Positions 21,249-62,878 are shown, numbered from the stretch's first letter. The stretch is 64,000 bases of DNA from Chrysemys picta bellii (GCF_011386835.1 NC_088810.1:23002001-23066000); one strand, 5' to 3'. The notes: generated by a model from the letters alone, not told the origin. Made by a program: numbers and translations.

Positions 21249-21647
21249 TTAGCATGGCCCACAGCTTCCAAAGCGGGAAGAATAGCACTTCCTACCATAT
21301 CCTTTCCCATACCCATATAAGCCACCGTATCCACCACCATACCCAGCACCGTATCCACCTCCATAAGCACCCCCAGAACTGACTGAGCCACCGAAACTAC
21401 CACCCCCATATGGGCTCCCATATCCATAGGGTAAATTTGGTAAGGTGCTTCCCACAACGCTGTCTTGAGGGCAGGTAGCGAGAATAGGTCCGGGGAATCT
21501 CACGACAACCGGTGGGGCATAGACCACTGCGCTCGAGTCACCGCATGATGTGACACAAGGCTCGTTCCAGGCATCAACATATGGGTTTGGGCAGATGTCG
21601 GGATAACATGGTGGACGTGGGTAACACAAATCTTTGCTGGAAGACAT
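21249..21647 (-). CDS. Corneous beta-protein type A, 132 aa (gene A4)
   Basis: Paralog of A2, start at 21647; intron 21668-22236; Trp instead of Cys at residue 27. Confidence 0.95.
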
Positions 21648-22297: not shown

Positions 22298-22340
22298 TTT
22301 TATACGCATTCTTAGCCAATGGGAAGCATAGAAAACACCC
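22298..22340 (-). promoter_or_regulatory. A4 core promoter
   Basis: TTTTATA 22298-22304 with CCAAT and CACCC at conserved spacing; donor at 22236. Confidence 0.85.
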
Positions 22341-25300
22341 TTATGTACTGAGACCTGATCATTAACCAAACCAAATATTTTCTTGCCTGTCTAATTCCTC
22401 TAATTGTTGTAATGGCTTTAATCATGGTTAATCAATTACTTAATTCTCAGTCAAACATAGGATGACATGCACAATACTCCCTGCAGTTTCTGTCATCTGA
22501 AATCTTTACGGGCAAGATGCCTTCCTGGTATCATCCTATTAACTTGTTTGGTATCAACACAGGTATAAATGTAGTTCCATTTTTATTCTTCTGCTTTCAA
22601 TGACTTCACAGTATGAGGTTGACTCAGGGGTGTATCACTCGCACAATCTCCTGTCATGCACTGGATTACATGTAAGTTTGTTATATACAAACTAGTACCT
22701 AATTACCAGCAAGGTGGAGTTTACCCTTGGAACTCCTTGGCGGATGGGAGAGTTTATTCGCGATGCTTAGAATCCCCACCCATAACTCTTCACTTAGTGT
22801 TTGAGACAATATGTTTTTGAAATCCATTGATGCCCTTTCAGTCAGTTCAATGGCTTTCAAACCAGGCTTTCTGGGTGACACTACTCTCCTAGAAACAGAG
22901 CCAGATCATGCCCAACGCTTAAGTTAAATCCCTTCTAAGCTTTCAAAGTAGAACTGAAGCAGAATCGAAGTGGTGCATATTATTTCTATAGAACCCTGAT
23001 TTTCAGCCTAATGCTAATAAACATTCAAGTCTGAAGGGACGTCCAGTCAAGTGATCAGTGATTTAAGGTTAGGGACTCACCTGGGAATCAGAACAGGACA
23101 CCTAAGGACGCCCTACTGCAGTGTTGTGTAAAGGTTTGGGATTAAAATCTTGACACTGGATCACCACAAGAGGGTGGTTTTCTTCTGGGGCAATGCGCCT
23201 GACCAAGAAAGCCCAGGAAGACTCACATGCGAGATGGAAATAAAGCCCACTTGGTCATGGCAAGATAGTTGAGGAATGAGCTTCCAGCAGAAATTAGACT
23301 AATCCAGGCTATGATCTACCTTAGCAAAGGATGCAAGGTCCTTCTCTTCTAGAAACTACCCCACCATTGCCCGTATTTTTTTCAACTGCTATCTACCCCT
23401 TCAGCAGCACTTTCTAGGACCAGGGCCGTAGGAAGAAGAAAAGACTCTATGAAGCTTACCAGGTAAATAGAAGGGAGGTTAATGATTTTACAACAAGGAC
23501 CAAGACTTCTCTCGCTAAACACAAGGCCAGTATATTCAAGAGACTAGTGATATCGGTGCCATACTTCAAACACCATGAAGATCCCTGCATTTCCAATGTG
23601 TTCAGTTCTTGCTCTATGGAGTCCAATTTCCTATAAGTTATCTCAAGTGGGCACCATGAATCTCCAGTCACTTTTGAAATCTCCGGTTTCAATGCTTCTC
23701 TCTTTAAATTGAAAGACATGAGACCTTTCAACTAGTGTCAGAACTTCTTGTTAAAGAAATGTATAGACATTCCTAAAGAACTGATGACGATAAGATACAT
23801 CATGGCTAAGATGGAGTGCCTAGGAACTTTTATTACGTGAAATCGAGGACAAGCTTTTCAGGTGGTGTAAAGAGGAAGAACGTCATTGTCCTGGATTCAA
23901 AAGTCCCATCACAGTAGGTTGCTTCACAACTGATTTTCCAAGCACGGGAGAATGAAACAGAGCAGCGGGCTAACTCAGAGATCTATGCTCCATTTGAATC
24001 CTCTTTAGCCCTACGTTGAATGTTTAAAAGAAATGTAAATGGTGCATAGTCTTTAGCTGGCCCGTTCTTGAGGAGAGGATTGCCAACCACAGGGCCATAT
24101 TTGAAGTCATCTCAATGCATTGGAAAGATGCCCTTGGATTTCACTGGGCACAGGATAAGGGCCCATATGAAATAGCTCTAGGTGGGCCTCCTAAGCATAT
24201 GAAGAAAATCTCCCCACCTCCCTGATGAGATTCCAGGATAAATTTTAAACTGATACAAGACTGGTTTTAAAGAACTGGCATGCAATCCTTGCAGGAAAGC
24301 AACGTCCATGTTTCCATGTGCATGTCATACCGTCTGGGAGTGAGAATTAACTAATAGCCTTAAAGAGGGATCACAACAATTGCCAGTAATGGGAGGAGAT
24401 TTCTGTGTAAAAATTTTTTATTTTGTAGGTGACATGGACTTCCTTGCATGCTGTACGAAAATAGAGCATAATCTGGATTACTCTCATTTCCTCTGGAAGC
24501 TCATACTTCAGTAAACCTCCCTCATTACTAAGTAGGTTTTTTTCCATCTCTCATGTGAGTCTTCCTGAGGAGTACTGTCTCAGAATTGTCTTTTCAGGTC
24601 ACGGCTGGTGATGACGTTCCAAGATTTTAAACCAAGCCTTTATAGAACATTGCACCCTTTCCGTTCAACTACCCGCACTTTTCGCTGCAAATCTAGAGGA
24701 ATCCTGCTATAGGCTGGCCTTCGATGTTCAGTTGTGATCCTCAAGTGAGTGCCTAACTTAAATCCACTGATCACTTGACCGGACATCTCCTCAGACTGGA
24801 ATGTCTAATAGCATTAGGCTGAAAATCAGGGATGAACATAAATAATATGAACCACTTTGATCCTGCTTCACTTCTATTTTGAAAACTTAGGAGGGAGTTA
24901 ACTTAAGCCTAGGGCATGTACTGCCCTGTTTCCAGGAGAGTATTGTAACCCAGAAGGGCTGGCTTCAAGACTATTGAACAGATTAAAAATATATCCAAGG
25001 ATTTCAAAAATATATTGGCCCAAACACATAGTGAAGAATTACAGATGGGGATTTTAAGCATGCCGAATAAACTCTCCCATCCACCAAGGAGTTCCAGGGT
25101 AAACACCTTGCCACTAATTATTTTCTAGTCTGGATATTACGGACTATGGAATCCTGTGCATGACAGCAGATTGTGCTTCTGATACATCCCTGAGTCACCC
25201 TCATACTGTGAAATAATTCAAAGCAGAATAAAGAAATGGAAGTAGATTTATTCCTGTGTTGACACCAAGGCAGTTAGTAGGATGACATCAGGAAACTATC

Positions 25301-31719: not shown

Positions 31720-32430
31720 AGTAATCCCTCCCCTTTACCTTCACAGAAGACCTACACAATTATATTAACCAGTTAATGTACCTGATGCTCTTCTTAATTA
31801 TGGGCATGAGTGGGACTGATTAGTGCATAGGGTTGGTACAGGCCATCTGCACAGGGGAGAATTTCACCCAGAGTGCATTGGAAAGAAAGACTGCAAGGGA
31901 AAGGAAAACCAGAAGGCCGATACTATGATGCAGCATAAACTTTTAATGGGACTGAGCAGCAGAGTTTACACTCACAGAATGAATTAATGCAGAGTACAGA
32001 GAATGTATTTTCCGGATTACAATAAAAGCTACAACCAGTCACCAATGCAATCAAAAATGCAGTATTTCACGCAAGATGTTCTGTTCTCTTTCTTGCAGGT
32101 GCAGAATTTGAAAATCATGTCAAGTTTCCAACCAAATTAAGTCACTTATGGTAGGACAGGACACAGCACAATATGAGCATAAGACTAAACTACAAAACCA
32201 CTAGACCATAAAGCAAAGGTAACATATAAAAAGAAGAAGCCACAGACAGGCCGGATTTATACAGATGATGAACACCCACAGCCCCCCTGATTTCAAGTGG
32301 AGTGGTAGGGTCTTACTTTCCATTAGCTGAGTGGTGAATCTCTACCTTGTCTGTCATTTCCTTGTTTCTTGTTCCGTGGATCTTTCTTCTGGGTTTAACA
32401 TGGGCCACAACTTCCAAAGCGGGAAGAATA
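31720..32430 (-). pseudogene. CBP remnant: last 11 codons ([11 protein letters not shown]) plus full 3' UTR; upstream coding sequence not recognisable
   Basis: Reverse complement of 32395-32430 encodes the type A C-terminus. 31720-32394 aligns to CBP 3' UTRs. The frame upstream has an in-frame TAG and no clear core box. Confidence 0.75.
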
Positions 32431-33459
32431 GGGAACAGAGGAAACATAACACGCTGTTGACAATGGAATAGGAGAATCACCGTTGGTGTTATATGGTAAT
32501 GTGGGCTATGTAGGTCCCTTTTTGCAGGCTACATATCTGGGTATTCTTATACACATCCACACCAACCAGCCAGCTCCCAGTATTGCTGACATAGTTGCTC
32601 TTAGCTGTCTTTTCTGTGAGATCCAAACTGGTAGGTGCACACTGAGAATACCTACTGGATTGGGACCCACAGGTAAAATAGGAAAGTGAATGCCTGCTCT
32701 CAGGATCTGCCTGGGAGTAAAGGGGAAGTTAGATGTCTTAGTCTCTCCGTGGATTTGGTTTCAGGAAATTAAAGGCTTGATAAAATTAGCAAGTGCTGAG
32801 CCCCTTTGAAATTCTGTTACTATTGGAGTCACCCAAGATCACACCGGAAATCTGTGCCAGAGAACAGGTCCCAAATCAGATTTTTGGAGGCCCTATTTGT
32901 GCTATGTCCACATGAACTTCCGTTCCCATCAAGCCCTTGAGGATGAGTAAAAATCATCAAGTCTCATTACTAAACCCACAATAGATAATATTTCCATCAT
33001 GGATGCCTGCGATTTTCAAACCATTTAGATAATTATAGCACAGAATAGCATGGCGATGCAGTAGATTATTCACACGTTCTTGTTAAACCAGTTTAACACA
33101 GGGTCTAAACCATCATACTTACCTTTCACTCAAATGTGCTACTTTGACTTGCACCAGCCAAAGACCTAGACCTAAAATGGCGAGTTGTAACAGTAAGAAA
33201 CTAAATATTGCATCAGGTCAGTGGTCCATCTCACCCAGGATATTATCGCTAGTAATGTGCAGCATCACAAGCCTCAGTTTAAGGTATAAGAATCCTGAAG
33301 TTGTCCACTATAGAGTAAACTGCCCTTAAGGTGACTTTATTCCTAATCCACCTAAAGTAGAGGTTAGCTTTGCCCTGAAGTTCAACACATACATATCCCT
33401 TCCAAACTCTGAGTTTCTTCTATACGTAGAAGCTCGATCTGCTAACCTGACTAGGACAG

Positions 33460-33835
33460 TAGAGGTGCTATTCAATTGTTATATTTCAAACCTGATCTCC
33501 ACCGCTTTATGGAAACAGCAGGGTCAGATCAGCAGCCCAGGTAACCCATTGTGATTCCAGTGAAGTCACCCCAGGAGCTGGCAATGTGTCGTTACACATA
33601 GAGAGTCAGAGTTGTGCAGTCTATTATCCACGTCATCTGAGGCTGAGATTTTTCATAATAGTCTAAAGCATTTCCAAACCACAATTATACTTACTAGGAA
33701 CTGGGGTCCCATCCCATATGTGGATTTGAAAATCCCAACCAGATATTTTTAAAGACGGCATGTGCCAATACCCACAATTGACTTGCTACAGAAAGTCTCC
33801 TGTGTAAACAAAGATGCTTTCTGTGTCAGCAATAC
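33460..33835 (-). pseudogene. Orphan CBP intron fragment lacking exon 1 and promoter
   Basis: Aligns to the type B intron (e.g. 35160-35520: ATGGAAACAGCAGGGTCAGATCA, GCTACAGAAAGTCTCC); abuts the 3' end of B1. Confidence 0.7.
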
Positions 33836-33886
33836 TAACATCATAGAGTATTTGCGAAGAGGGAAATATAGTCTTTTTGAGAGTCA

Positions 33887-34616: not shown

Positions 34617-35087
34617 TTAACATGGGCCACAGCTTCCACGGCGGGAAGAATAGCACCTCCCACCATATCGCCTCCCATACCCGCATAAGCCACCATAGCC
34701 ACCCCCGTATCCACCACCATAACCACATAAGCCCCCATAACCATATGAGCCTCCATAACTGCTTAAGCCCCCATAACCATAACCACCCTCTAAAGCACCC
34801 CCATATCCACTACCATAACCAATTGGGCCACCCAAAGCACCACCCCCAAATGAGCCCCCAGCTCGGTAGGGTAGAGCTGGTAAGGTGCTTCCCACTAGGC
34901 TGTGTTGAGGACAAGAAGAGAGAATTGGTCCTGGGAATAGCACGGAAACCGGTGGTGGATAGACCACTGCTGTTGAATCTGCACACGAGGTGACACAAGG
35001 CTCATTGCGGGCAACAACACATGGATCTGGGCATATGTCAGGATAACACGGGCTGGGTCGGCAAGACAGGTCTTTGCAGGAAGACAT
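34617..35087 (-). CDS. Corneous beta-protein type B, 156 aa (gene B1)
   Basis: MSSCKDLSC start, core box [33 protein letters not shown], Gly-Tyr tail; intron 35108-35611. Confidence 0.95.
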
Positions 35088-40292: not shown

Positions 40293-40841
40293 TTAACATG
40301 GGCCACAACTTCCACGGCGGGAAGAATAGCACCTCCCACCATATCTCCTCCCATACCCGCATAAGCCACCATAGCCACCCCCGTATCCAGCACCATAACC
40401 ACATAAGCCACCATAGCCACCCCCGTATCCAGCACCATAACCACATAAGCCCCCATAACCATATGAGCCTCCATAACCGCTTAAGCCCCCATAACCATAT
40501 GAGCCTCCATAACCGCTTAAGCCCCCATAACCATAACCACCCTCTAAAGCACCCCCATATCCACTACCATAACCAATTGGGCCACCCAAAGCACCACCCC
40601 CAAATGAGCCCCCAGCTCCATAGGGTAGAGCTGGTACCGTGCTTCCCACTAGGCTGTGTTGAGGGGAAGTAGAGAGAATTGGTCCTGGGAATAGCACGGA
40701 AACCGGTGGTGGATAGACCACTGCTGTTGAATCTGCACACGAGGTGATACAAGGCTCATTGCGGGCAACAACACATGGTTCTGGGCATATGTCAGGATAA
40801 CACGGGCTGGGTCGGCAAGACAGGTCTTTGCAGGAAGACAT
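40293..40841 (-). CDS. Corneous beta-protein type B, 182 aa (gene B2)
   Basis: Core box and expanded Gly-Tyr tail; intron 40862-41366. Confidence 0.95.
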
Positions 40842-45335: not shown

Positions 45336-45345
45336 TTTATTTATT
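45336..45345 (-). terminator. Double poly(A) signal (B3)
   Basis: TTTATTTATT on the + strand; lies outside the 7967-bp duplicated unit. Confidence 0.65.
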
Positions 45346-46044
45346 CCCATTCTGTAACAAGGGAGTAATTCCCTCCTCTGCAGAGAACCTACACAGTGTT
45401 ATTGACCAATTCATGTATTGATTCTCTTCTTTCTTATGGGCATGAGTGGGATTGATACATTGCATCGAGCTTGCGTGGACTATCTGCACAGGGGGGAATT
45501 TCACCCAGAGTACTTTGGAAAGAAAGAATGGAGGGGAAAGGAAAACCAGAAGGCCAATAATATGATGCAGCATCATTTTTAATGGGAACAAACATCAGAG
45601 TTTGCACTTACAGAATGAATTAATGCAGAGTACAGAAATGGTATTTTCAGGGTTACAAAGAAAGCTACAACCCATCACCAGCTGCAGAGTGATGCATGTC
45701 ACACAATCTGTTCTGCCATCTTGCAGCCAGCCACGCAGTGTGAAAATCATCTCACATTTTCAACGAGATTAAGCCACTTGTGGTAGACTGTTCAGCATCA
45801 GAAAGGACAAAGCATAATATGAGCGTAAGACTAAACTGCAAAACCACTACACCATAAAGAAAAGGTAACATATAACAAGAAGAAGACATACAGAGCCCTG
45901 AATTATATAGGCAATGAACACCCACAGCCCCCACTGATTTCGAGTGGAGCTGTAGGCTCTAATTTTTCATAAGTTGAATGATGAATCTCTTTCTTCTCTT
46001 CCATGTCCTGGTTGTTTCTTCTTCCGTGGTTCTTTCTTCTGGGT

Positions 46045-46551
46045 TTAACATGGGCCACAACTTCCACGGCGGGAAGAATAGCACCTCCCACCATATCTCC
46101 TCCCATACCCGCATAAGCCACCATAGCCACCCCCGTATCCAGCACCATAACCACATAAGCCACCATAGCCATATGAGCCTCCATAACCGCTTAAGCCCCC
46201 ATAACCATATGAGCCTCCATAACTGCTTAAGCCCCCATAACCATAACCACCCTCTAAAGCACCCCCATATCCACTACCATAACCAATTGGGCCACCCAAA
46301 GCACCACCCCCAAATGAGCCCCCAGCTCGGTAGGGTAGAGCTGGTAAGGTGCTTCCCACTAGGCTGTGTTGAGGGGAAGTAGAGAGAATTGGTCCTGGGA
46401 ATAGCACGGAAACCGGTGGTGGATAGACCACTGCTGTTGAATCTGCACACGAGGTGATACAAGGCTCATTGCGGGCAACAACACATGGATCTGGGCATAT
46501 GTCAGGATAACACGGGCTGGGTCGGCAAGACAGGTCTTTGCAGGAAGACAT
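46045..46551 (-). CDS. Corneous beta-protein type B, 168 aa (gene B3)
   Basis: Core box; intron 46572-47075. Confidence 0.95.
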
Positions 46552-47136
46552 TTTTTGTGATGGTCGTAAACCTGAAACACACAGAAGAGAGCAGAGGAAA
46601 CTTAACACGCTTTAGGTAGAGCGGCCTTCAATAGTTATATTTCAAATCTGTCCTCCATGGTTTAATGGAAACAGCAGGGTCAGATCATCAGCCCAGGCAA
46701 CCCATTGTAATTCCAGTGAAATCACCCAAAGCGCTGGCAATGTGTATTTACACATAACATGTCAGAATAATACAGTCTATTATCTAAGGCTGAGATTTTT
46801 CATAATTGTCTAACGAATTCCCATGTCCAATCCCAAATTATAATTATTGGGAACAGGGGTCCCAATCCCATATGTAGATTTGAAAATCCCAACCAGATAT
46901 TTTTAAAGTCAGCAGGTGCAAACGTCTATGACTGACTAGCTACAGAAAGTCTCCTATGCAAAGAACGATGCCTCCTGTCCCAACACTTGTAAAATCATAG
47001 CGCACAGGACTTAGTTCAAAATTCAAACGATTAATAAAGCAGCAATTGGTGGCAGTTGGAGCCAAAGAAACTTACCAAGCTCACCAAGGAGAGGAAGTCA
47101 AGAGAAGTGGATAGAACAACCTGGAGTTGCAGGCAC

Positions 47137-47179
47137 TTTTATACACCTTCTTAGCCAATGGGAAGGATAGTAAACACCC
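47137..47179 (-). promoter_or_regulatory. B3 core promoter
   Basis: TTTTATA 47137-47143, CCAAT, CACCC; donor at 47075. Confidence 0.85.
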
Positions 47180-48226
47180 TTTATGCCCTCAGACCTTGTC
47201 ATTAACCCCAAAAACTATTTTCTTGAATGGGCAACTCCTCTAATTATTGTAATAGCTTTGATCATAGTTAATGATTACTAGTCAATTCACTGTCCCACAT
47301 AGGATGACATGCATGCTACTACTTGTGGTTCCCTTTCATCTTGAATCTTTATGGGCCTGATATCTTCCTGGGATTATCCCACTGACTTTCTTGGTGTCAA
47401 CACGGGAATCAATCTAGCTCCAGTTCTTTCATTCTGCTTTGAAGAACTTCAGAGTATGAGGGTGACTCAGAGATGTATCACTTGTACAATCTGCTGTCAT
47501 GGACAAGATTCCATGTTAGTTCTTTATATCCAAACTAGTATCTAATTAGCGCAAGGCAGAGTTTACCCTTGGAACTCCTTGGAGGAACAGAGGCATTAAT
47601 CTGCATGCTTGGAATACCTACCCATAACTATCCCCAAACATGTGTTTGCGCCAACATGCTTTTGAAATCCCTGGATGTCTTTCTAACCAGTTCCATGGCC
47701 TTCAAATCAGGCCTTCTGGCTTACAATACTCTCCTGGAGTCACAGCCAATACATGACCTATTAAAAACTTCAGTACCTGCTAAGCTTTCAAAGTAGACCT
47801 GAAGCAGGATTGAATAGGTACATATATCTTTGTGTTCTACCTGTGCCCAAAAATGACATTATGCCTAGTGCGCTTAGACATTCCAGTCTGAAGTGAAGTC
47901 CTGTAAAGTGATCAGTGATTTAGAGTCACAACTCAGGTGATGATCACAATAGAGCACATAAGGTCTACTTAATGCACTCATTCCCCTGAGTTGCAGCGAA
48001 AAGTGGCAGTAGGTGAAAGGAAAAAGTGCAATGTTGTATTAAAGCTTGGAATTAAAGTCTTGGAACTGCATCTCCATCCTGGACCTAAGAGGACAATGAT
48101 GTTCTTCTGGGACAATGCTGCTAAGAAAGCCCAGGAAGAATCACATGACAGATGGAAATGAAGCCCACTGTCACAAACACACCGAATAAATTTGTTCTCC
48201 CACAGATATCAAAAACACAACAACAA

Positions 48227-48412
48227 ATAGCTCAGTGGTTTGAGCATTGGCCTGCTAAACCCAAGTTGTGAGTTCAATCCTTGAGGGGGCCACTTGGGGA
48301 TCTGGGGCAAAATCAGTACTTGGTCCTGCTAGTGAAGGCAGGGGGCTGGACTCGATGACCTTTCAAGGTTCCTTTTAGTTCTAGGAGATGGGATATCTCC
48401 ATTTATTTATTT
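48227..48412 (+). mobile_element. tRNA-derived SINE (5' G-head missing)
   Basis: ATAGCTCAGTGG A box, GAGTTCAATCC B box, (ATTT)n tail; empty sites at about 36770 and 42520. Confidence 0.85.
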
Positions 48413-49236
48413 AAAGTCACTTTTGGGACTCAGGACTCCCAGGCAATTACTTCAGTAAAGGAGTCTAATGTCTTTTAATGTAGATTGACACTCAGCACCT
48501 CAAATGACCTTCATTTTTTAAAGTGAATTGGCATGAGCATGACAAAAGTTACAGAACAAGGCAATCTTGAACTTCTGCCACCCTTTTGGATTTACTCTTG
48601 ATGGAGCTCTCGAGCCTTGTTCTGGCACCATTTTTACACCCAGGTTGCAGTACTGTAAAGGAAAACACTAGCTTCAGGGTGGTGGAGAATAAGGCACTTT
48701 GGTTTCATTTCAGAACACATTCCGTAAGTATTTGGGGCCTGACGTTTTTCTCCCTTGGCCGTCCAATGCTGTCCTGCAGCGGGGTGTTGACCTGCTAGGT
48801 TAGATTTGTTTTTCCTGGATGGATGCCCGATGCTTCTAGCTCCTCTCGATCAATTATAGCCAGCTTGGCATTGGGTAATGGTATGAGTATCGCCTCTGGC
48901 TCTAAGGAGCCCTCTGATTGGCTGGGAGATAGCTGCACACGTCTCTACCCCTTTGCTTCAGCCTGAGAAGGAGCAAATAGCGATTTAGTCTTTCTTTTGA
49001 ATGTAGAAATGTTGGAATGTGTGGAAACCCAAACACAATCTGACTTGACCTGAAAATTTGGCTCGAAGCAGCCATGTGCTGGTGGGCAACATTTAGGGCA
49101 AGCTATTGTTTTTATCCTCAGCAGACTGAATGGGCACATATCTGCTGAATCTATATGGTTCTAATGTTGATATCACTATCTGGTTTTCTTTGTGTTGCGT
49201 ATGTGCCAATATAATGCATCATAATTTTGTAACATA

Positions 49237-49611
49237 CAGTAGAACCTCAGGGTTATGGACACTGGAGTTACCAACTGACCGGTCAACCACACACCTCATT
49301 TGGAACCAGAAGTATGCAATCAGGCAGCAGCAGAGGCAACAACAACAAGAAAAAGCAAATACAGCACCGTGTGAAACATAACTACTGAAAAAGTTAAGGG
49401 AAAGTTTAACAAAAAATTGACAACTGTTCTGTGCTTGTTACATTTAAATGAAGATGGTTAAAAGCAGCATTTTTCTTCTGTAGACCAAAGTTTCAAAGCA
49501 GTATTAAGTCAACCTTCAGTGGTAAACTTTTAAAAGAACCGCCCACATGTTTTGTTCAGCATTACGAACAACCTCCATGCATAAGGTGGTTACAATTCTG
49601 ATGTTCTACTG
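49237..49611. mobile_element. Tigger-like MITE (paralogous copy)
   Basis: Same termini and site. Confidence 0.7.
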
Positions 49612-50534
49612 TCTGTGGTTTTTGAAGGGTCGCACATATATTCGGTATTTGAGGTGGGGTGATGGGAGGGATATATATCTCCCAGCTCTCTGGAACTGAG
49701 ATGTAGATGGCACAGAAAGACTCTCCGTTGAGAATACCCCTGCTTCCTGGTCTCCCTCCCCTTTAGCTCCCAATCCTTCCATTTACAGCTTCAGACACTA
49801 ACAAAATGTCTGCCTAGCTCTTTCCTAACAATTTATCCTTACGCTTCTTTATGAGTTTAGTAATTCTCACAACACCCATCTGAAACAGGTCATTATTATC
49901 TTATTATCTAAGAAAGTGAACACTGATGCTTTCAGCCTAATTCATTTGCCCAAGGCCACTCCAGTGGAAAGCCTGGGACTGGAACTCAGGAACACCTAAT
50001 TACTAATAGTCTTGTTAGTTATAATTTGACCTCTAATATCTCCAGGATAGCAGCCATGCTCTCAGGGCCCCATTGTCCTGCTCAGTATATAAACTCAGAG
50101 TGTATGCTGCATTATGAACACATTATGACAAACAATAACAAGGGGATTATTTTAACTTACTTCTAATAGCGGATAGGAATCTGAGGGTGAAATATGATTC
50201 TGAAATATTGTAGAAAAGTGGAATTTTCTTTTATTTATATCAGCTTGGATCACAAGCCTTCAGGGACTTGCACAAGTGCTTAACTTGAATTGTGTGAACA
50301 GCCTCATTGAGTTCAAACCATCAACTCAAACACTTGAAACAAAGAATGTGAATATGTATCGCAGGAAGGGAGATGTAGAGATTTTTGTGGGGCATAAAAC
50401 AAGCCAAGTTTTTAGAGTGTATTAATGAGGTGTCGGAGGAAATTCATTATTCAACTAAAAACCTTTTCCAATTTTTTATAAGAATAGCACTCATACTTCC
50501 TTAAAGGTTATAATACGTTAGGGAAAAGACATTA

Positions 50535-51930
50535 CCTTATTAATGGAGAGTAATTGTTTTAGAAACTCAAGTGTATCTTGTTAATAGTAAGGCTTTTGAT
50601 TCAGTCCAACATGGGATTCTCTTAAACAAATTAGGGAAACATTTCCCTCGACAACATGTTCGAGATGTAATTTCTAAAAAGTGGGTGCATAACTGGTTGA
50701 AAGTCCAGACTCAAAGATTAATTATCAATGGTTTCCTTTGTATGTGGGAGACATATTTAGTGGGGACCCAAAAGAGGCTGTCCTGAGTCCAGTATTATGC
50801 GATATATTCTTTAATGACTTTAGTAATGGTGTGGAGAGTTCACTTATACAATTTGTGAATGACATCAAGCTGAACGGGGTTGCAAGCATTTTGGAGGGCA
50901 GGATTTGAATTCAAAATGACCTTGACAAATCTGAGAATTGGTCTGAAATCAACAAGATGAAATCCAATAAAGAAAAGTGCAAAGTCTTATCATTACGATA
51001 GAAACTGTCCTGCTCTAATTGGCACCAGTTAGGCCTCAGATGGAGCATTGTGTCCAGTTCTAAATGACGCACTTAGGTAGGAAAGATGTGGACTAATTGC
51101 AGAGAGACCAGAGGAGAGCTACGAAAATGATAAAAGGTTTAGAAAATTGGAGCTATGAGAAAAAGTTAAAGAAATCTTGGGAAATTTAGTCCTGAGAAAC
51201 CAAAAACTGAGGGAGTGGGGATCTAATAACAGTCTTCATGTGTGTTCCGGAGTGTTATAGAGAAGATGGTGGTCAATTTTTCTCCATATCCACTAAAGAT
51301 AGGACAAGGAAAATCTGGAAAAGAAAAGATTGAGAGGGGACATGATAACAGTTTTCAGGTAAGTAAAAGGTTAAAAGAAAGAGGGAGAAAAATTGTTCTT
51401 CTTAACCACTGAGGATAGGACAAGAAGCAACGGGCTTAAATTGCAGCAAGGGAGGTTTAGGTTGGACATAGGAAAAACTTCCTTACTGTCAGGGTGGTTA
51501 AGCACTGGACTAAATTGACCAGGGAGGTTGTGGAATCTTCATCATTGGAGATTTTTAAGAGCTGATTAGACAGACCCCTGTCAGAGATGGTCTAGATAAT
51601 ACTTAGTCCTGCCATGAGTGCAGGGGACTGGAGTAGATGACCTCTCGAGGTCCCATCCAGTCGTATGATTCTATGATAATCTGCAACAAGGGAGATTTAT
51701 GTTATATATCATCATAAACTTTTTAACTATCATGACAGTTAAGCTCTGATTTTAGGCTTCCAAGGGAGATTGCAGAATCCTCACCACTGGAGGTTTTGAA
51801 GAACAGGTTAAATAAACACCTGTTAGGGATGGTCTAGGTGTACTTGGTCCCACCTTAGTGCAGAGGGATGGACTATATGACCTCTTGAGGTCTCTTCCTG
51901 CCTTATATTTCAAACAATTCTATGACTCTA
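50535..51930 (+). mobile_element. Old CR1 RT fragment plus nested CR1 3' ends
   Basis: KAFDSVQHGILLNKLGK (RT KAFD motif) and AGAATTGGTCTGAAATCAACAAGATGAAA; about 750 bp longer than the two left-hand paralogs. Confidence 0.8.
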
Positions 51931-51972
51931 TAGAATATTTAGAAGAGGGAAATATAATCTTTTTGAGAGTCA

Positions 51973-51997
51973 TTTATTTATTCCCATTCTATTTATT
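51973..51997 (-). terminator. Triple poly(A) signal (B4, possibly serving B5 too)
   Basis: TTTATTTATT plus a short tandem duplication of ATTTATTCCCATTCT that adds a third hexamer. Confidence 0.6.
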
Positions 51998-52696
51998 CCC
52001 ATTCTGTAACAAGGGAGTAATTCCCTACTGTGCAGAGAACCTACACAGTGTTATTGACCAATTCATGTACTGATTCTCTTCTTTCTTATGGGCATGAGTG
52101 GGATTGACACAGTGCATAGAGCTTGTGTGGACTATCTGCACAGGGGAGAATTTCATCCAGAGTACTTTGGAAAGAAAGAATGGAGGGGAAAGGAAAACCA
52201 GAAGGCCGATAATATGATGCAGCATCATTTTTAATGGGAACGAACATCAGAGTTTGCACTTACAGAATGAATTAATGCAGAGTACAGAAATGGTATTTTC
52301 AGGGTTACAAAGAAAGCTACAACCCATCACCAGCTGCAGAGTGATGCATGTCACACAATCTGTTCTGCCATCTTGCAGCCAGCTACCCAGTGTGAAAATC
52401 ATCTCACATTTTCCACGAGATTAAGCCACTTGTGGTAGACTGTTCAGCATCAAAAAGGACAAAGCATAATATGAGCGTAAGACTAAACTGCAAAACCACT
52501 ACACCATAAAGAAAAGGTAACATATAACAAGAAGAAGCCATACAGAGCCCTGGATTATATAGGCAATGAACACCCACAGCCCCCACTGATTTCGAGTGGA
52601 GCTGTAGGCTCTGATTTTTCATAAGTTGAATGGTGAATCTCTCTCTTCTCTTCCATGTCCTGGTTGTTTCTTCTTCCGTGGTTCTTTCTTCTGGGT

Positions 52697-53239
52697 TTAA
52701 CATGGGCCACAGCTTCCACGGCGGGAAGAATAGCACCTCCCACCATATCTCCTCCCATACCCGCATAAGCCACCATAGCCACCCCCATATCCTCCACCAT
52801 AACCACATAAGCCCCCATAACCATATGAGCCTCCATAACCGCTTAAGCCCCCATAACCATATGAGCCTCCATAACCGCTTAAGCCCCCATAACCATATGA
52901 GCCTCCATAACTGCTTAAGCCCCCATAACCATAACCACCCTCTAAAGCACCCCCATATCCACTACCATAACCTATTGGGCCACCCAAAGCACCACCCCCA
53001 AATGAGCCCCCAGCTCGGTAGGGTAGAGCTGGTAAGGTGCTTCCCACTAGGCTGTGTTGAGGGGAAGAAGAGAGAATTGGTCCTGGGAATAGCACGGAAA
53101 CCGGTGGTGGATAGACCACTGCTGTTGAATCTGCACACGAGGTGATACAAGGCTCATTGCGGGCAACAACACATGGATCTGGGCATATGTCAGGATAACA
53201 CGGGCTGGGTCGGCAAGACAGGTCTTTGCAGGAAGACAT
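52697..53239 (-). CDS. Corneous beta-protein type B, 180 aa (gene B4): intact ORF and splice acceptor, but no exon 1 or promoter of its own
   Basis: Same protein as B6. Exon 2 starts at 53259, but the intron is cut at about 53435 by the 3' UTR of B5. Confidence 0.8.
52742..52937 (-). repeat. Coding minisatellite of 36-nt (and 42-nt) units in the type B Gly-Tyr tail
   Basis: AAGCCCCCATAACCATATGAGCCTCCATAACCGCTT repeated; unit number differs between paralogs. Boundaries approximate. Confidence 0.8.
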
Positions 53240-54011
53240 TTTTTGTGATGGTCGTAAACCTGAAACTCACAGAAGAGAGCAGAGGAAACTTAACACGCTT
53301 TAGGTAGAGCGGCCTTCAATAGTTATATTTCAAATCTGTCCTCCATGGTTTAATGGAAACAGCAGGTCAGATCATCAGCCCAGGCAACCCATTGTAATTC
53401 CAGTGAAATCACCCAAAGCGCTGGCAATGTGTATTATCAATGTGGACTATCTGCACAGGGGGGAATTTCACCCAGAGTACTTTGGAAAGAAAGAATGGAG
53501 GGGAAAGGAAAACCAGAAGGCCAATAATATGATGCAGCATCATTTTTAATGGGAACAAACATCAGAGTTTGCACTTACAGAATGAATTAATGCAGAGTAC
53601 AGAAATGGTATTTTCAGGGTTACAAAGAAAGCTACAACCCATCACCAGCTGCAGAGTGATGCATGTCACACAATCTGTTCTGCCATCTTGCAGCCAGCCA
53701 CGCAGTGTGAAAATCATCTCACATTTTCAACGAGATTAAGCCACTTGTGGTAGACTGTTCAGCATCAGAAAGGACAAAGCATAATATGAGCGTAAGACTA
53801 AACTGCAAAACCACTACACCATAAAGAAAAGGTAACATATAACAAGAAGAAGACATACAGAGCCCTGAATTATATAGGCAATGAACACCCACAGCCCCCA
53901 CTGATTTCGAGTGGAGCTGTAGGCTCTAATTTTTCATAAGTTGAATGATGAATCTCTTTCTTCTCTTCCATGTCCTGGTTGTTTCTTCTTCCGTGGTTCT
54001 TTCTTCTGGGT

Positions 54012-54518
54012 TTAACATGGGCCACAACTTCCACGGCGGGAAGAATAGCACCTCCCACCATATCTCCTCCCATACCCGCATAAGCCACCATAGCCACCCC
54101 CGTATCCAGCACCATAACCACATAAGCCACCATAGCCATATGAGCCTCCATAACCGCTTAAGCCCCCATAACCATATGAGCCTCCATAACTGCTTAAGCC
54201 CCCATAACCATAACCACCCTCTAAAGCACCCCCATATCCACTACCATAACCAATTGGGCCACCCAAAGCACCACCCCCAAATGAGCCCCCAGCTCGGTAG
54301 GGTAGAGCTGGTAAGGTGCTTCCCACTAGGCTGTGTTGAGGGGAAGTAGAGAGAATTGGTCCTGGGAATAGCACGGAAACCGGTGGTGGATAGACCACTG
54401 CTGTTGAATCTGCACACGAGGTGATACAAGGCTCATTGCGGGCAACAACACATGGATCTGGGCATATGTCAGGATAACACGGGCTGGGTCGGCAAGACAG
54501 GTCTTTGCAGGAAGACAT
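54012..54518 (-). CDS. Corneous beta-protein type B, 168 aa (gene B5); 3' UTR truncated
   Basis: Same protein as B3 (offset 7967); intron 54539-55042; 3' UTR ends at the 53442 junction, before the AATAAATAAA position. Confidence 0.9.
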
Positions 54519-55103
54519 TTTTTGTGATGGTCGTAAACCTGAAACACACAGAAGAGAGCAGAGGAAACTTAACACGCTTTAGGTAGAGCGGCCTTCAATA
54601 GTTATATTTCAAATCTGTCCTCCATGGTTTAATGGAAACAGCAGGGTCAGATCATCAGCCCAGGCAACCCATTGTAATTCCAGTGAAATCACCCAAAGCG
54701 CTGGCAATGTGTATTTACACATAACATGTCAGAATAATACAGTCTATTATCTAAGGCTGAGATTTTTCATAATTGTCTAACGAATTCCCATGTCCAATCC
54801 CAAATTATAATTATTGGGAACAGGGGTCCCAATCCCATATGTAGATTTGAAAATCCAAACCAGATATTTTTAAAGTCAGCAGGTGCAAACGTCTATGACT
54901 GACTAGCTACAGAAAGTCTCCTATGCAAAGAACGATGCCTCCTGTCCCAACACTTGTAAAATCATAGCGCACAGGACTTAGTTCAAAATTCAAACGATTA
55001 ATAAAGCAGCAATTGGTGGCAGTTGGAGCCAAAGAAACTTACCAAGCTCACCAAGGAGAGGAAGTCAAGAGAAGTGGATAGAACAACCTGGAGTTGCAGG
55101 CAC

Positions 55104-55146
55104 TTTTATACACCTTCTTAGCCAATGGGAAGGATAGTAAACACCC
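55104..55146 (-). promoter_or_regulatory. B5 core promoter (nearest upstream promoter for both B5 and B4)
   Basis: TTTTATA 55104-55110, CCAAT, CACCC; donor at 55042. Confidence 0.85.
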
Positions 55147-56193
55147 TTTATGCCCTCAGACCTTGTCATTAACCCCAAAAACTATTTTCTTGAATGGGCA
55201 ACTCCTCTAATTATTGTAATAGCTTTGATCATAGTTAATGATTACTAGTCAATTCACTGTCCCACATAGGATGACATGCATGCTACTACTTGTGGTTCCC
55301 TTTCATCTTGAATCTTTATGGGCCTGATATCTTCCTGGGATTATCCCACTGACTTTCTTGGTGTCAACACGGGAATCAATCTAGCTCCAGTTCTTTCATT
55401 CTGCTTTGAAGAACTTCAGAGTATGAGGGTGACTCAGAGATGTATCACTTGTACAATCTGCTGTCATGGACAAGATTCCATGTTAGTTCTTTATATCCAA
55501 ACTAGTATCTAATTAGCGCAAGGCAGAGTTTACCCTTGGAACTCCTTGGAGGAACAGAGGCATTAATCTGCATGCTTGGAATACCTACCCATAACTATCC
55601 CCAAACATGTGTTTGCGCCAACATGCTTTTGAAATCCCTAGATGTCTTTCTAACCAGTTCCATGGCCTTCAAATCAGGCCTTCTGGCTTACAATACTCTC
55701 CTGGAGTCACAGCCAATACATGACCTATTAAAAACTTCAGTACCTGCTAAGCTTTCAAAGTAGACCTGAAGCAGGATTGAATAGGTACATATATCTTTGT
55801 GTTCTACCTGTGCCCAAAAATGACATTATGCCTAGTGCGCTTAGACATTCCAGTCTGAAGTGAAGTCCTGTAAAGTGATCAGTGATTTAGAGTCACAACT
55901 CAGGTGATGATCACAATAGAGCACATAAGGTCTACTTAATGCACTCATTCCCCTGAGTTGCAGCGAAAAGTGGCAGTAGGTGAAAGGAAAAAGTGCAATG
56001 TTGTATTAAAGCTTGGAATTAAAGTCTTGGAACTGCATCTCCATCCTGGACCTAAGAGGACAATGATGTTCTTCTGGGACAATGCTGCTAAGAAAGCCCA
56101 GGAAGAATCACATGACAGATGGAAATGAAGCCCACTGTCACAAACACACCGAATAAATTTGTTCTCCCACAGATATCAAAAACACAACAACAA

Positions 56194-56379
56194 ATAGCTC
56201 AGTGGTTTGAGCATTGGCCTGCTAAACCCAAGTTGTGAGTTCAATCCTTGAGGGGGCCACTTGGGGATCTGGGGCAAAATCAGTACTTGGTCCTGCTAGT
56301 GAAGGCAGGGGGCTGGACTCGATGACCTTTCAAGGTTCCTTTTAGTTCTAGGAGATGGGATATCTCCATTTATTTATTT
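56194..56379 (+). mobile_element. tRNA-derived SINE (paralog)
   Basis: Same sequence and site as 48227-48412. Confidence 0.85.
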
Positions 56380-57203
56380 AAAGTCACTTTTGGGACTCAG
56401 GACTCCCAGGCAATTACTTCAGTAAAGGAGTCTAATGTCTTTTAATGTAGATTGACACTCAGCACCTCAAATGACCTTCATTTTTTAAAATGAATTGGCA
56501 TGAGCATGACAAAAGTTACAGAACAAGGCAATCTTGAACTTCTGCCACCCTTTTGGATTTACTCTTGATGGAGCTCTCGAGCCTTGTTCTGGCACCATTT
56601 TTACACCCAGGTTGCAGTACTGTAAAGGAAAACACTAGCTTCAGGGTGGTGGAGAATAAGGCACTTTGGTTTCATTTCAGAACACATTCCGTAAGTATTT
56701 GGGGCCTGACGTTTTTCTCCCTTGGCCGTCCAATGCTGTCCTGCAGCGGGGTGTTGACCTGCTAGGTTAGATTTGTTTTTCCTGGATGGATGCCCGATGC
56801 TTCTAGCTCCTCTCGATCAATTATAGCCAGCTTGGCATTGGGTAATGGTATGAGTATCGCCTCTGGCTCTAAGGAGCCCTCTGATTGGCTGGGAGATAGC
56901 TGCACACGTCTCTACCCCTTTGCTTCAGCCTGAGAAGGAGCAAATAGCGATTTAGTCTTTCTTTTGAATGTAGAAATGTTGGAATGTGTGGAAACCCAAA
57001 CACAATCTGACTTGACCTGAAAATTTGGCTCGAAGCAGCCATGTGCTGGTGGGCAACATTTAGGGCAAGCTATTGTTTTTATCCTCAGCAGACTGAATGG
57101 GCACATATCTGCTGAATCTATACGGTTCTGATGTTGATATCACTATCTGGTTTTCTTTGTGTTGCGTATGTGCCAATATAATGCATCATAATTTTGTAAC
57201 ATA

Positions 57204-57578
57204 CAGTAGAACCTCAGGGTTATGGACACTGGAGTTACCAACTGACCGGTCAACCACACACCTCATTTGGAACCAGAAGTATGCAATCAGGCAGCAGCAG
57301 AGGCAACAACAACAAGAAAAAGCAAATACAGCACCGTGTGAAACATAACTACTGAAAAAGTTAAGGGAAAGTTTAACAAAAAATTGACAACTGTTCTGTG
57401 CTTGTTACATTTAAATGAAGATGGTTAAAAGCAGCATTTTTCTTCTGTAGACCAAAGTTTCAAAGCAGTATTAAGTCAACCTTCAGTGGTAAACTTTTAA
57501 AAGAACCGCCCACATGTTTTGTTCAGCATTACGAACAACCTCCATGCATAAGGTGGTTACAATTCTGATGTTCTACTG
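57204..57578. mobile_element. Tigger-like MITE (paralogous copy)
   Basis: Same termini and site. Confidence 0.7.
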
Positions 57579-58501
57579 TCTGTGGTTTTTGAAGGGTCGC
57601 ACATATATTCGGTATTTGAGGTGGGGTGATGGGAGGGATATATATCTCCCAGCTCTCTGGAACTGAGATGTAGATGGCACAGAAAGACTCTCCGTTGAGA
57701 ATACCCCTGCTTTCTGGTCTCCCTCCCCTTTAGCTCCCAATCCTTCCATTTACAGCTTCAGACACTAACAAAACGTCTGCCTAGCTCTTTCCTAACAAAT
57801 TATCCTTACGCTTCTTTATGAGTTTAGTAATTCTCACAACACCCATCTGAAACAGGTCATTATTATCTTATTATCTAAGAAAGTGATCATTGATGCTTTC
57901 AGCCTAATTCATTTGCCCAAGGCCACTCCAGTGGAAAGCCTGGGACTGGAACTCAGGAACACCTAATTACTAATAGTCTTGTTAGTTATAATTTGACCTC
58001 TAATATCTCCAGGATAGCAGCCATGCTCTCAGGGCCCCATTGTCCTGCTCAGTATATAAACTCAGAGTGTATGCTGCATTATGAACACATTATGACAAAC
58101 AATAACAAGGGGATTATTTTAACTTACTTCTAATAGCGGATAGGAATCTGAGGGTGAAATATGATTCTGAAATATTGTAGAAAAGTGGAATTTTCTTTTA
58201 TTTATATCAGCTTGGATCACAAGCCTTCAGGGACTTGCACAAGTGCTTAACTTGAATTGTGTGAACAGCCTCATTGAGTTCAAACCATCAACTCAAACAC
58301 TTGAAACAAAGAATGTGAATATGTATCGCAGGAAGGGAGATGTAGAGATTTTTGTGGGGCATAAAACAAGCCAAGTTTTTAGAGTGTATTAATGAGGTGT
58401 CGGAGGAAATTCATTATTCAACTAAAAACCTTTTCCAATTTTTTATAAGAATAGCACTCATACTTCCTTAAAGGTTATAATACGTTAGGGAAAAGACATT
58501 A

Positions 58502-59897
58502 CCTTATTAATGGAGAGTAATTGTTTTAGAAACTCAAGTGTATCTTGTTAATAGTAAGGCTTTTGATTCAGTCCAACATGGGATTCTCTTAAACAAATTA
58601 GGGAAACATTTCCCTCGACAACATGTTCGAGATGTAATTTCTAAAAAGTGGGTGCATAACTGGTTGAAAGTCCAGACTCAAAGATTAATTATCAATGGTT
58701 TCCTTTGTATGTGGGAGACATATTTAGTGGGGACCCAAAAGAGGCTGTCCTGAGTCCAGTATTATGCGATATATTCTTTAATGACTTTAGTAATGGTGTG
58801 GAGAGTTCACTTATACAATTTGTGAATGACATCAAGCTGAACGGGGTTGCAAGCATTTTGGAGGGCAGGATTTGAATTCAAAATGACCTTGACAAATCTG
58901 AGAATTGGTCTGAAATCAACAAGATGAAATCCAATAAAGAAAAGTGCAAAGTCTTATCATTACGATAGAAACTGTCCTGCTCTAATTGGCACCAGTTAGG
59001 CCTCAGATGGAGCATTGTGTCCAGTTCTAAATGACGCACTTAGGTAGGAAAGATGTGGACTAATTGCAGAGAGACCAGAGGAGAGCTACGAAAATGATAA
59101 AAGGTTTAGAAAATTGGAGCTATGAGAAAAAGTTAAAGAAATCTTGGGAAATTTAGTCCTGAGAAACCAAAAACTGAGGGAGTGGGGATCTAATAACAGT
59201 CTTCATGTGTGTTCCGGAGTGTTATAGAGAAGATGGTGGTCAATTTTTCTCCATATCCACTAAAGATAGGACAAGGAAAATCTGGAAAAGAAAAGATTGA
59301 GAGGGGACATGATAACAGTTTTCAGGTAAGTAAAAGGTTAAAAGAAAGAGGGAGAAAAATTGTTCTTCTTAACCACTGAGGATAGGACAAGAAGCAACGG
59401 GCTTAAATTGCAGCAAGGGAGGTTTAGGTTGGACATAGGAAAAACTTCCTTACTGTCAGGGTGGTTAAGCACTGGACTAAATTGACCAGGGAGGTTGTGG
59501 AATCTTCATCATTGGAGATTTTTAAGAGCTGATTAGACAGACCCCTGTCAGAGATGGTCTAGATAATACTTAGTCCTGCCATGAGTGCAGGGGACTGGAG
59601 TAGATGACCTCTCGAGGTCCCATCCAGTCGTATGATTCTATGATAATCTGCAACAAGGGAGATTTATGTTATATATCATCATAAACTTTTTAACTATCAT
59701 GACAGTTAAGCTCTGATTTTAGGCTTCCAAGGGAGATTGCAGAATCCTCACCACTGGAGGTTTTGAAGAACAGGTTAAATAAACACCTGTTAGGGATGGT
59801 CTAGGTGTACTTGGTCCCACCTTAGTGCAGAGGGATGGACTATATGACCTCTTGAGGTCTCTTCCTGCCTTATATTTCAAACAATTCTATGACTCTA
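58502..59897 (+). mobile_element. Old CR1 RT fragment plus nested CR1 3' ends (duplicate)
   Basis: Copy of 50535-51930 at offset 7967. Confidence 0.8.
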
Positions 59898-59939
59898 TAG
59901 AATATTTAGAAGAGGGAAATATAATCTTTTTGAGAGTCA

Positions 59940-59964
59940 TTTATTTATTCCCATTCTATTTATT
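59940..59964 (-). terminator. Triple poly(A) signal (B6)
   Basis: Copy of 51973-51997 at offset 7967. Confidence 0.6.
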
Positions 59965-60663
59965 CCCATTCTGTAACAAGGGAGTAATTCCCTACTGTGC
60001 AGAGAACCTACACAGTGTTATTGACCAATTCATGTACTGATTCTCTTCTTTCTTATGGGCATGAGTGGGATTGACACAGTGCATAGAGCTTGTGTGGACT
60101 ATCTGCACAGGGGAGAATTTCATCCAGAGTACTTTGGAAAGAAAGAATGGAGGGGAAAGGAAAACCAGAAGGCCGATAATATGATGCAGCATCATTTTTA
60201 ATGGGAACGAACATCAGAGTTTGCACTTACAGAATGAATTAATGCAGAGTACAGAAATGGTATTTTCAGGGTTACAAAGAAAGCTACAACCCATCACCAG
60301 CTGCAGAGTGATGCATGTCACACAATCTGTTCTGCCATCTTGCAGCCAGCTACCCAGTGTGAAAATCATCTCACATTTTCCACGAGATTAAGCCACTTGT
60401 GGTAGACTGTTCAGCATCAAAAAGGACAAAGCATAATATGAGCGTAAGACTAAACTGCAAAACCACTACACCATAAAGAAAAGGTAACATATAACAAGAA
60501 GAAGCCATACAGAGCCCTGGATTATATAGGCAATGAACACCCACAGCCCCCACTGATTTCGAGTGGAGCTGTAGGCTCTGATTTTTCATAAGTTGAATGG
60601 TGAATCTCTCTCTTCTCTTCCATGTCCTGGTTGTTTCTTCTTCCGTGGTTCTTTCTTCTGGGT

Positions 60664-61206
60664 TTAACATGGGCCACAGCTTCCACGGCGGGAAGAATAG
60701 CACCTCCCACCATATCTCCTCCCATACCCGCATAAGCCACCATAGCCACCCCCATATCCTCCACCATAACCACATAAGCCCCCATAACCATATGAGCCTC
60801 CATAACCGCTTAAGCCCCCATAACCATATGAGCCTCCATAACCGCTTAAGCCCCCATAACCATATGAGCCTCCATAACTGCTTAAGCCCCCATAACCATA
60901 ACCACCCTCTAAAGCACCCCCATATCCACTACCATAACCTATTGGGCCACCCAAAGCACCACCCCCAAATGAGCCCCCAGCTCGGTAGGGTAGAGCTGGT
61001 AAGGTGCTTCCCACTAGGCTGTGTTGAGGGGAAGAAGAGAGAATTGGTCCTGGGAATAGCACGGAAACCGGTGGTGGATAGACCACTGCTGTTGAATCTG
61101 CACACGAGGTGATACAAGGCTCATTGCGGGCAACAACACATGGATCTGGGCATATGTCAGGATAACACGGGCTGGGTCGGCAAGACAGGTCTTTGCAGGA
61201 AGACAT
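60664..61206 (-). CDS. Corneous beta-protein type B, 180 aa (gene B6)
   Basis: Core box, three 12-aa tail units; intron 61227-61729. Confidence 0.95.
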
Positions 61207-61790
61207 TTTTTGTGATGGTCGTAAACCTGAAACTCACAGAAGAGAGCAGAGGAAACTTAACACGCTTTAGGTAGAGCGGCCTTCAATAGTTATATTTCAA
61301 ATCTGTCCTCCATGGTTTAATGGAAACAGCAGGTCAGATCATCAGCCCAGGCAACCCATCGTAATTCCAGTGAAATCACCCAAAGCGCTGGCAATGTGTA
61401 GTTACACATAACGTGTCAGAATAATACAGTCTATTATCTAAGGCTGAGATTTTTCATAATTGTCTAACGAATTCCCATGTCCAATCCCAAATTTTAATTA
61501 TTGGGAACAGGGGTCCCAATCCCATATGTAGATTTGAAAATCCCAACCAGATATTTTTAAGGTCAGCATGTGCAAACATCTACGACTGACTAGCTACAGA
61601 AAGTCTCCTATGCAAAGAAAGACACCTCCTGTCCCAACACTTGTAAAATCATAGCGCACCGGACTTAGTTCAAAATTCAAACGATTAATAAAGCAGCAAT
61701 TGGTGGCAGTTGGAGCCAAAGAAACTTACCAAGCTCACCAAGGAGAGGAAGTCAAGAGAAGTGGATAGAACAACCTGGAGTTGCAGGCAC

Positions 61791-61833
61791 TTTTATACAC
61801 CTTCTTAGCCAATGGGAAGGATAGTAAACACCC
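61791..61833 (-). promoter_or_regulatory. B6 core promoter
   Basis: TTTTATA 61791-61797, CCAAT, CACCC; donor at 61729. Confidence 0.85.
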
Positions 61834-62878
61834 TTTATGCCCTCAGACCTTGTCATTAACCCCAAAAACTATTTTCTTGAATGGGCAACTCCTCTAATTA
61901 TTGTAATAGCTTTGATCATAGTTAATGATTACTAGTCAATTCACTGTCCCACATAGGATGACATGCATGCTACTGCTTGTACCCTTTCATCTTGAATCTT
62001 TATGGGCCTGATATCTTCATGGGATTATCCCACTGACTTTCTTGGAGTCAACACGGGAATCAATCCAGCTGCAGTACTTTCATTCTGCTTTGAAGAACTT
62101 CAGAGTATGAGGGTGTCTCAGAGATGTATCACTTGTACAATCTGCTGTCACGGACAAAATTCCATGTTAGTTTTTTATACCCAGACTTGTATCTAATTAG
62201 CGCAAGGCGGAGTTTACCCTTGGAACTCCTTGGAGGAACAGAGGCATTAATCTGCATGCTTGGAATACCTACCCATAACTATCCCCAAACATGTGTTTGC
62301 GCCAACATGCTTTTGAAATCCCTGGATGTCTTTCTAACCAGTTCAATGGCCTTCAAATCAGGCCTTTTCGCTTACAATACTCTCCTGGACTCACAGCCAA
62401 TACATGACCTATTAAAAACTTCAGTACCTGCTAAGCTTTCAAAGTAGACCTGAAGCAGGATTGAATAGGTACATATGTCTTTGTGTTCTACCTATGCCCA
62501 GAAATGACATTAAGCCTAATGCGCTTAGACATTCCAATCTGAAATGAAATCCTGTCAAGTGATCAGTGCTTTAGAGTTACAAACTCAGCTGATGATCAAA
62601 ATAGAGCACATAAGGTCTACTTAATGCACTCATTCCCCTAAGTTGCAGCGAAAAGTGGCAGTAGGTGAAAGGAAAAAGTGCAATGTTGTATTAAAGCTTG
62701 GAATTAAAGTCTTGGAACTGCATCTCCATCCAGGACCTAAGAGGACAATGATGTTCTTCTGGGACAATGCTGCTAAGAAAGCCCAGGAAGAATCACATGA
62801 CAGATGGTAATGAAGCCCACTGTCACAAACACATTGAATAAGTTTGTTCTCCCACAGATATCAAGAACACAACAACAA

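Follow-up and report, generated by a model that had tools for sequence, protein, structure and literature searches.

The window, a stretch of 64,000 nucleotides of the Chrysemys picta bellii assembly (GCF_011386835.1, NC_088810.1:23002001-23066000), lies inside a cluster of corneous beta-protein (beta-keratin, PF02422) genes that spans at least 250 kb, and contains two subfamilies of these genes, A-type and B-type. The A-type subfamily has five genes, which encode 132 aa each and are found between 4 and 27 kb in alternating orientation. The B-type subfamily has six genes, all of them on the minus strand: B1 (CDS 34617-35087), B2 (CDS 40293-40841), B3 (45341-46551), B4 and B5, which are described below, and B6 (60664-61887). 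B3 is a complete gene with a CDS at 46551-46045 and a full 3' UTR, which shows an ATTAAA at 45583 and the distal signal AATAAATAAA at 45345-45336. B6 is also complete, with a promoter and exon 1 region at 61887-61677, a donor at 61729, an intron of 503 nt and a CDS at 61206-60664. The closest database proteins are turtle keratins, and the best of them is a Chrysemys picta bellii entry whose first 74 residues are identical. Exact-protein look-ups with B4, B5, B1, A3 and this Chrysemys match found no record in other assemblies or transcripts. The Logan contigs of P0083 proved to be a bird-type keratin without match to the window.

B5 shows all the parts of a two-exon gene on the minus strand. 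A TATA box (TATAAAA) is located at 55110-55104, with a conserved ATTGG box (an inverted CCAAT) ahead of it. The non-coding exon 1 extends over 55043-55080; its 3' end is set by an invariant GGTAAGT donor, and its 5' end was placed, from the promoter alignment, about 30 nt past the TATA box. The donor G is found at 55042 (TTG|GTAAGT), 68 nt past the TATA box, and is followed by an intron of 504 nt (54539-55042) that ends in the acceptor AG at 54540-54539. Exon 2 up to the stop codon (54012-54538) has a 20-nt leader and a CDS (54518-54012) of 168 aa with a PF02422 core scoring 73.6 bits (cut-off 25). The 3' region that is kept extends over 53442-54011 (570 nt). All eight aligned promoters, which come from both subfamilies, share without variation the inverted CCAAT box, the TATA box, exon 1 and GGTAAGT. 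In SEDC genes, the donor lies 60-90 nt past the TATA box and the acceptor 10-30 nt ahead of the ATG (Holthaus et al. 2016, PMC4760078), and the B5 spacings of 68 and 20 nt fall within these published ranges. A preliminary description of this DNA had placed the B5 promoter, an exon 1 donor at 55042, an acceptor at 54538 and a CDS of 168 aa on the minus strand, and each of them is found there.

B4, located downstream of B5 on the same strand, has a coding exon but lacks the 5' part of a gene. It starts with an intron remnant of B6 type (53260-53433), which is the last 174 of 503 nt and retains the pyrimidine tract and the TTTCAG acceptor. The coding exon up to the stop codon (52697-53259) has a 20-nt leader and a CDS (53239-52697) of 180 aa, with a PF02422 core scoring 71.9 bits against the same cut-off. 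The full 3' UTR (51973-52696) follows, with an ATTAAA at 52235-52230 and AATAAA at 51997, 51982 and 51978. The same description had listed for B4 an intron end of about 175 nt, the acceptor at 53259, the 180-aa CDS, the 3' UTR and three AATAAA, all of which we also find, and had stated that B4 has neither exon 1 nor TATA box of its own. This absence agrees with a search using the B5 promoter and exon 1 as probe, which found no exon 1 or TATA homologue between B5 and B4 (53260-54011); its matches were at 35769-35559, 41524-41314, 47233-47023, 55200-54990 and 61887-61677, as well as at the A-type genes, and sit upstream of B1, B2, B3, B5, B6 and the A-type genes. A cryptic B4 promoter was considered and rejected as the main reading: the only TATA-like motif there is a TATATAA near 53872, whose nearest usable donor is about 150 nt off, outside the 60-90 nt rule, and every B-type 3' UTR has both this TATATAA and the GTGAGA donor at 53722.

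The arrangement of B5 and B4 corresponds to a head-to-tail tandem duplication of 7,967 bp, in which B5 was copied from B3 and B4 from B6. Copy A (45475-53433) contains B3 minus its distal 3' end, intergenic DNA, B4 and the 174 nt of intron; copy B (53442-61400) contains B5, intergenic DNA, B6 and, from the intron of B6, the 3' 174 nt. A self-BLAST of the window aligns 45475-53436 with 53442-61404 over 7,963 columns at 99.85% identity, whereas the other units of the array are only 94-97% alike in the self-comparison, and given this one long self-alignment the arrangement is far beyond chance. Compared base by base, the two copies differ at 11 substitutions (eight transitions and three transversions), without any indel in 7,959 bp. 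With paralogs as outgroup, derived states are present in both copies; the copy differences look biological rather than like consensus errors. B4 is identical to B6 nucleotide for nucleotide along the acceptor, the CDS, the 3' UTR and 2 kb beyond, and the sole B4-specific base is a T at 53393, in the intron remnant, against a C at 61360 in B6. From the divergence of 0.14%, and with an assumed rate of ~1e-9 per site per year, the duplication would be roughly a million years old or less. As a separate observation, 10 of the 11 copy differences fall within 46890-49923 (post hoc binomial P ~5e-4).

Between the two copies, an offset comparison shows a filler of 8 nt on the minus strand, ATTGATAA (53434-53441), which is present in neither parent. 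Together with the preceding CAC, the filler repeats a CACATTG found 13 nt further on, which makes a local repeat of 7 nt. No homology was found between the two parental breakpoints, one in the B6 intron and the other in the B3 3' region, and the full junction sequence has a single occurrence in the assembly. End joining or template switching typically leaves a junction of this look, and unequal crossing-over does not. Unequal crossing-over between array units was also rejected on the length of the copied segment, which equals 1.2-1.4 units, and on breakpoints without shared homology. The off-register, non-homologous tandem duplication that the preliminary description had proposed as the origin is thus upheld by the self-alignment and the non-homologous junction. 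According to this origin, one recent duplication would have copied a segment with one end 570 nt beyond the stop codon of B3 and the other 174 nt ahead of the acceptor of B6, and would thereby have set B4, without promoter or exon 1, at a distance of 183 nt from where the retained B5 3' region ends.

The locus offers a base-resolution view of how a beta-keratin array can grow, by an off-register and non-homologous duplication and not by unit-for-unit unequal crossing-over. Such duplications yield promoterless copies as a by-product, which is ordinary where gene families grow; the locus itself has no bearing on a major open question. The genes B3, B5 and B6 are like the SEDC-type corneous beta-protein genes (PMC4760078) in the TATA-donor distance of 68 nt, the short non-coding exon 1 and the acceptor 20 nt before the ATG; furthermore, they share with them the single coding exon with a PF02422 core, the tandem arrays grown by segmental duplication and the occurrence of partial genes. 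B4 differs from these genes: it is a coding exon with an acceptor, has neither exon 1 nor TATA box, and lies within the region downstream of a different gene. Over 10 partial genes for beta-keratins have already been reported in Chrysemys picta (PMC4760078).

The consequence of the duplication for B5 depends on its 3' end. The B5 3' region stops matching B3 at 53442, which is +570 after the stop codon, while AATAAATAAA of B3 lies at +700, so that about 130 nt are missing in B5. It keeps a proximal ATTAAA at 53545-53550 on the minus strand (+462 after the stop codon), next to a conserved U/GU-rich element, which is the probable poly(A) signal of B5, and the distance from this hexamer to the breakpoint is 103 nt. 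The 3' regions of nine window genes were compared with those of 19 further paralogs of the same cluster (28 in total). An ATTAAA is found at about +380 to +462 in 27 of the 28 UTRs, the exception having an AATAAA 4 nt later, and the downstream U/GU-rich element TGGTTTTCC is likewise present in 27 of 28. The most conserved 3' stretch corresponds to UTR columns 461-560 (0.94-0.98 versus a mean of 0.83), with a drop past about +600, and the ATTAAA hexamer ranks 14th among 795 six-column UTR windows (sixth-best-to-first ranking). The whole of this conserved poly(A) block lies inside the B5 3' region. By its sequence, B5 has its own poly(A) signal, as a complete unit does, made up of the retained ATTAAA and the downstream element.

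The distal AATAAA is absent in three of these nine window genes (three of the five A-type) and in 11 of the 19 other paralogs, all of them with ORFs. Half of the compared paralogs (14 of 28) therefore combine an intact ORF with the lack of a distal AATAAA, and the state of B5 is normal for the family. Both hexamers are present in one Chelydra gene and in one Carettochelys gene; both are ancient, and the distal site is probably functional too. Of the claim that the B5 3' UTR is cut, the loss of the distal AATAAA stands, but the terminator is not lost with it, as the ATTAAA block conserved in 27 of 28 paralogs is kept. The preliminary description had itself cautioned that ATTAAA variants remain at 53545-53550 and 53349-53354; both are present, the second one at 53354-53349 on the minus strand, and the first lies in the conserved poly(A) block. 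Since this most strictly conserved block is intact in B5, what had been a caveat becomes the main expectation. A 3' UTR of about 480 nt would fit avian feather keratin mRNAs.

Given these features, we favor with moderate confidence the reading that takes B5 as a normal gene and B4 as a partial duplicate, young and largely silent. B5, with its promoter, exon 1, intron, CDS and poly(A) block kept, would act as a normal two-exon gene, and most of its transcripts would be expected to end about 20 nt past the ATTAAA at 53550-53545. Transcription of B4 would need polymerases that run past the B5 poly(A) site, and production of its protein would further need exon 1 to skip the near-identical proximal acceptor. 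B4 would thus be a partial duplicate that was dead on arrival, and is predicted to be largely silent. The intact B4 ORF is explained by the youth of the copy, which has no differences from B6, and gives no sign of selection. For annotation, this means that ORF-based surveys would count B4 as a gene despite its missing promoter, and that expression assigned to B4 from multi-mapping reads would really be that of B6.

The first alternative concerns the assembly itself. The two copies could be haplotypes, or an uncollapsed overlap, of one B3-B6 segment, in which case B4 and B5 would not be extra genes; we consider this possible, although rather doubtful. Near-identical adjacent copies in a hard-to-assemble array, with a difference at the level of heterozygosity, are features shared with false duplications of assemblies (PMC9516828), and tandem arrays are known to be hard to assemble (PMC3673632). 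An [x-y][x-y] layout with 0.14% substitutions is what would be expected from unmerged allelic contig ends, and it fits two haplotypes. However, false duplications on the same scaffold typically flank a gap (Ko et al. 2022, PMC9516828), and here the window contains no N and there is no gap between the copies. Moreover, the junction joins unrelated sequences with 8 filler bases, which is a type of join that overlap assembly does not yield, the copies show no indels in 7,959 bp, and there is no alternative haplotig of the region elsewhere in the assembly.

Public sequencing runs bear on the same alternative. A 60-nt junction probe (53408-53467), represented by only two sampled words, listed no public run. 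Three DNA runs (X1, X2 and X14) were compared with 52300-58200; among the pieces listed, which are a minority of all pieces, none bridges 53434-53441, and neither a joint nor a loose end is found there. At 55640, 56490, 57123, 57713 and 57799, five of the positions where the copies differ, the three runs carry the copy-A letter, as would be expected of a single segment, and only X2, at 57713, shows the other letter too. The copy-A letter is ancestral by the paralog outgroup at three of these five sites, while 57123 and 57713 are undecided by this outgroup. The contigs of the runs lie mostly at a SINE at ~56.2-56.4 kb and at a second repeat at 57.2-57.6 kb, and contig depth in Logan contigs of other samples is not equivalent to copy number. 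Furthermore, X1, X2 and X14 differ by about 1-2% from the window in the listed pieces and may come from other species or populations, so that their silence on the junction says little. We infer from the absence of a gap and from the filler-bearing join that the junction is probably present in the animal as well as in the assembly.

The second alternative accepts the duplication and takes B5 and B4 as a working fused unit, in which the B5 promoter would serve both coding exons, either by alternative splicing to 54538 or 53259 (168 or 180 aa) or by a read-through mRNA with B4 in its 3' UTR. We regard it as unlikely. The two acceptors are near-identical, with one pyrimidine-tract substitution and one 1-nt indel in 174 nt; nevertheless, the proximal of two equal acceptors is normally preferred, as it is transcribed first, and the B5 acceptor should therefore win. 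The intact ORF and complete poly(A) signals of B4 would suit a working exon, but the integrity of the ORF is accounted for by the age of the copy, as explained above. B5 lacks the canonical distal AATAAA, a signal conserved as far as Carettochelys, and its ATTAAA is only 285 nt from the B4 acceptor, a distance well inside the usual travel of the polymerase past a poly(A) site. If the distal AATAAATAAA site were the main one in vivo, which may be the case, B5 transcripts would then often enter B4. Against this, B5 has an intact proximal poly(A) block, and about half of the paralogs have no other signal of this kind.

Read-through transcripts could also be spliced from within the B5 3' region, where an approximate matrix of our own points to two cryptic donors, AAT|GTGAGA at 53722 and CT|GTAAGT at 53578. 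RNA spliced from these donors to the B4 acceptor would probably be unstable, as its exon junction would lie far past the B5 stop codon and degradation would be expected. In the published literature, our searches found nothing on alternatively spliced beta-keratins of turtles or on their poly(A) signals. Pairs known from 5'-truncated tandem duplicates and from read-through (conjoined) genes are like B5 and B4 in the single junction, the breakpoints in two genes and the promoterless downstream copy, and they also allow read-through or alternative use of terminal exons. They differ from the present pair in that the upstream B5 keeps a conserved poly(A) signal and in that a B4 mRNA would equal that of the parent B6.

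This equality follows from the exon 1 region, which is 100% identical in B3, B5 and B6: with B4 identical to B6, an mRNA joining exon 1 to B4 would be, base for base, the B6 mRNA. The preliminary description had relied on phasing of cDNA reads to tell B4 apart from B6, which is impossible on mature mRNA, where exon 1, CDS and 3' UTR are all identical. Consequently, only RNA that bears the junction, or the T at 53393, is assignable to a B5-B4 unit. A real junction would make the locus a natural experiment, on a small scale, on how near-identical acceptors compete and how a poly(A) site is chosen.

A narrower form of the fused unit, in which the B5 promoter feeds two mutually exclusive coding terminal exons, at 54538 (168 aa) or, with the B5 exon and poly(A) site skipped, at 53259 (180 aa), appears improbable. 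The 180-aa protein has one more 12-residue Gly-Tyr unit than the 168-aa protein. If this form were true, the locus would be the first case of mutually exclusive coding exons in a gene of the epidermal differentiation complex, seen no more than roughly a million years after its birth. Among the four runs compared with 52300-58200, only one is RNA-like, and it gave a single contig of 220 nt, located at 53902-54124.

The corneous beta-protein family has two poly(A) hexamers, one proximal and one distal. The distal AATAAA is tripled by a 15-nt internal duplication that is common to B4 (51973-51997), the promoterless coding copy directly behind B5, to its complete parent B6 (59940-59964) and to L001, the next gene past the end of the window, which encodes 182 amino acids; in B1-B3 this hexamer is doubled, not tripled. 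In the distantly related turtles Chelydra serpentina (L025) and Carettochelys insculpta (L026), both signals are conserved: ATTAAA and the associated U-rich block at the proximal site, and AATAAATAAATGA at the distal site. Despite this conservation, roughly half of the paralogs in the present genome have lost the distal hexamer, a pattern that hints at tandem alternative polyadenylation in the beta-protein family.

Of the 11 sites at which the tandem duplicate copies differ, ten are concentrated in a 3-kb stretch of intron and intergenic sequence (46890-49923 versus 54857-57890), and the other 4.9 kb shows one difference. Possible explanations for this clustering are that the copies have undergone gene conversion with each other or that they are mosaic in origin.

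Long His-rich ORFs of 134-171 amino acids are found on the plus strand, antisense to the B-type Gly-Tyr repeats (52630-53145, 53945-54349, 45978-46382 and 60597-61112), and sense-strand ORFs in other frames also occur in these genes. Neither the antisense nor the out-of-frame sense ORFs are genes; both result from the composition of the repeats.

Elsewhere in the window, a degenerate 3' UTR-like B-type piece (31744-32431) and an intron-like one (33471-33846) show about 80% identity to 52033-52733 and 54594-54967, respectively. The interval separating them lacks an intact beta-protein ORF, so the two pieces probably represent a decayed member of the array. The A-type block (4061-26645) contains five beta-protein genes of 132 amino acids each on alternating strands (+,-,+,-,+), in which a two-gene unit of about 11.5 kb is repeated with about 95-96% identity (e.g., 9104-12019 versus 20583-23506).

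The interspersed repeat at 56194-56380 (copy at 48227-48413) has a tRNA-like head and resembles a turtle SINE, and Rfam gave no match for it. Repeats of this type are found upstream of B3, B5 and B6 and are absent upstream of B1 and B2. The repeat at 56194-56380 reached a contig depth of 1e5-1e6 in all four sequencing runs compared, including the RNA-like run. A second repeat is located at 57225-57618.
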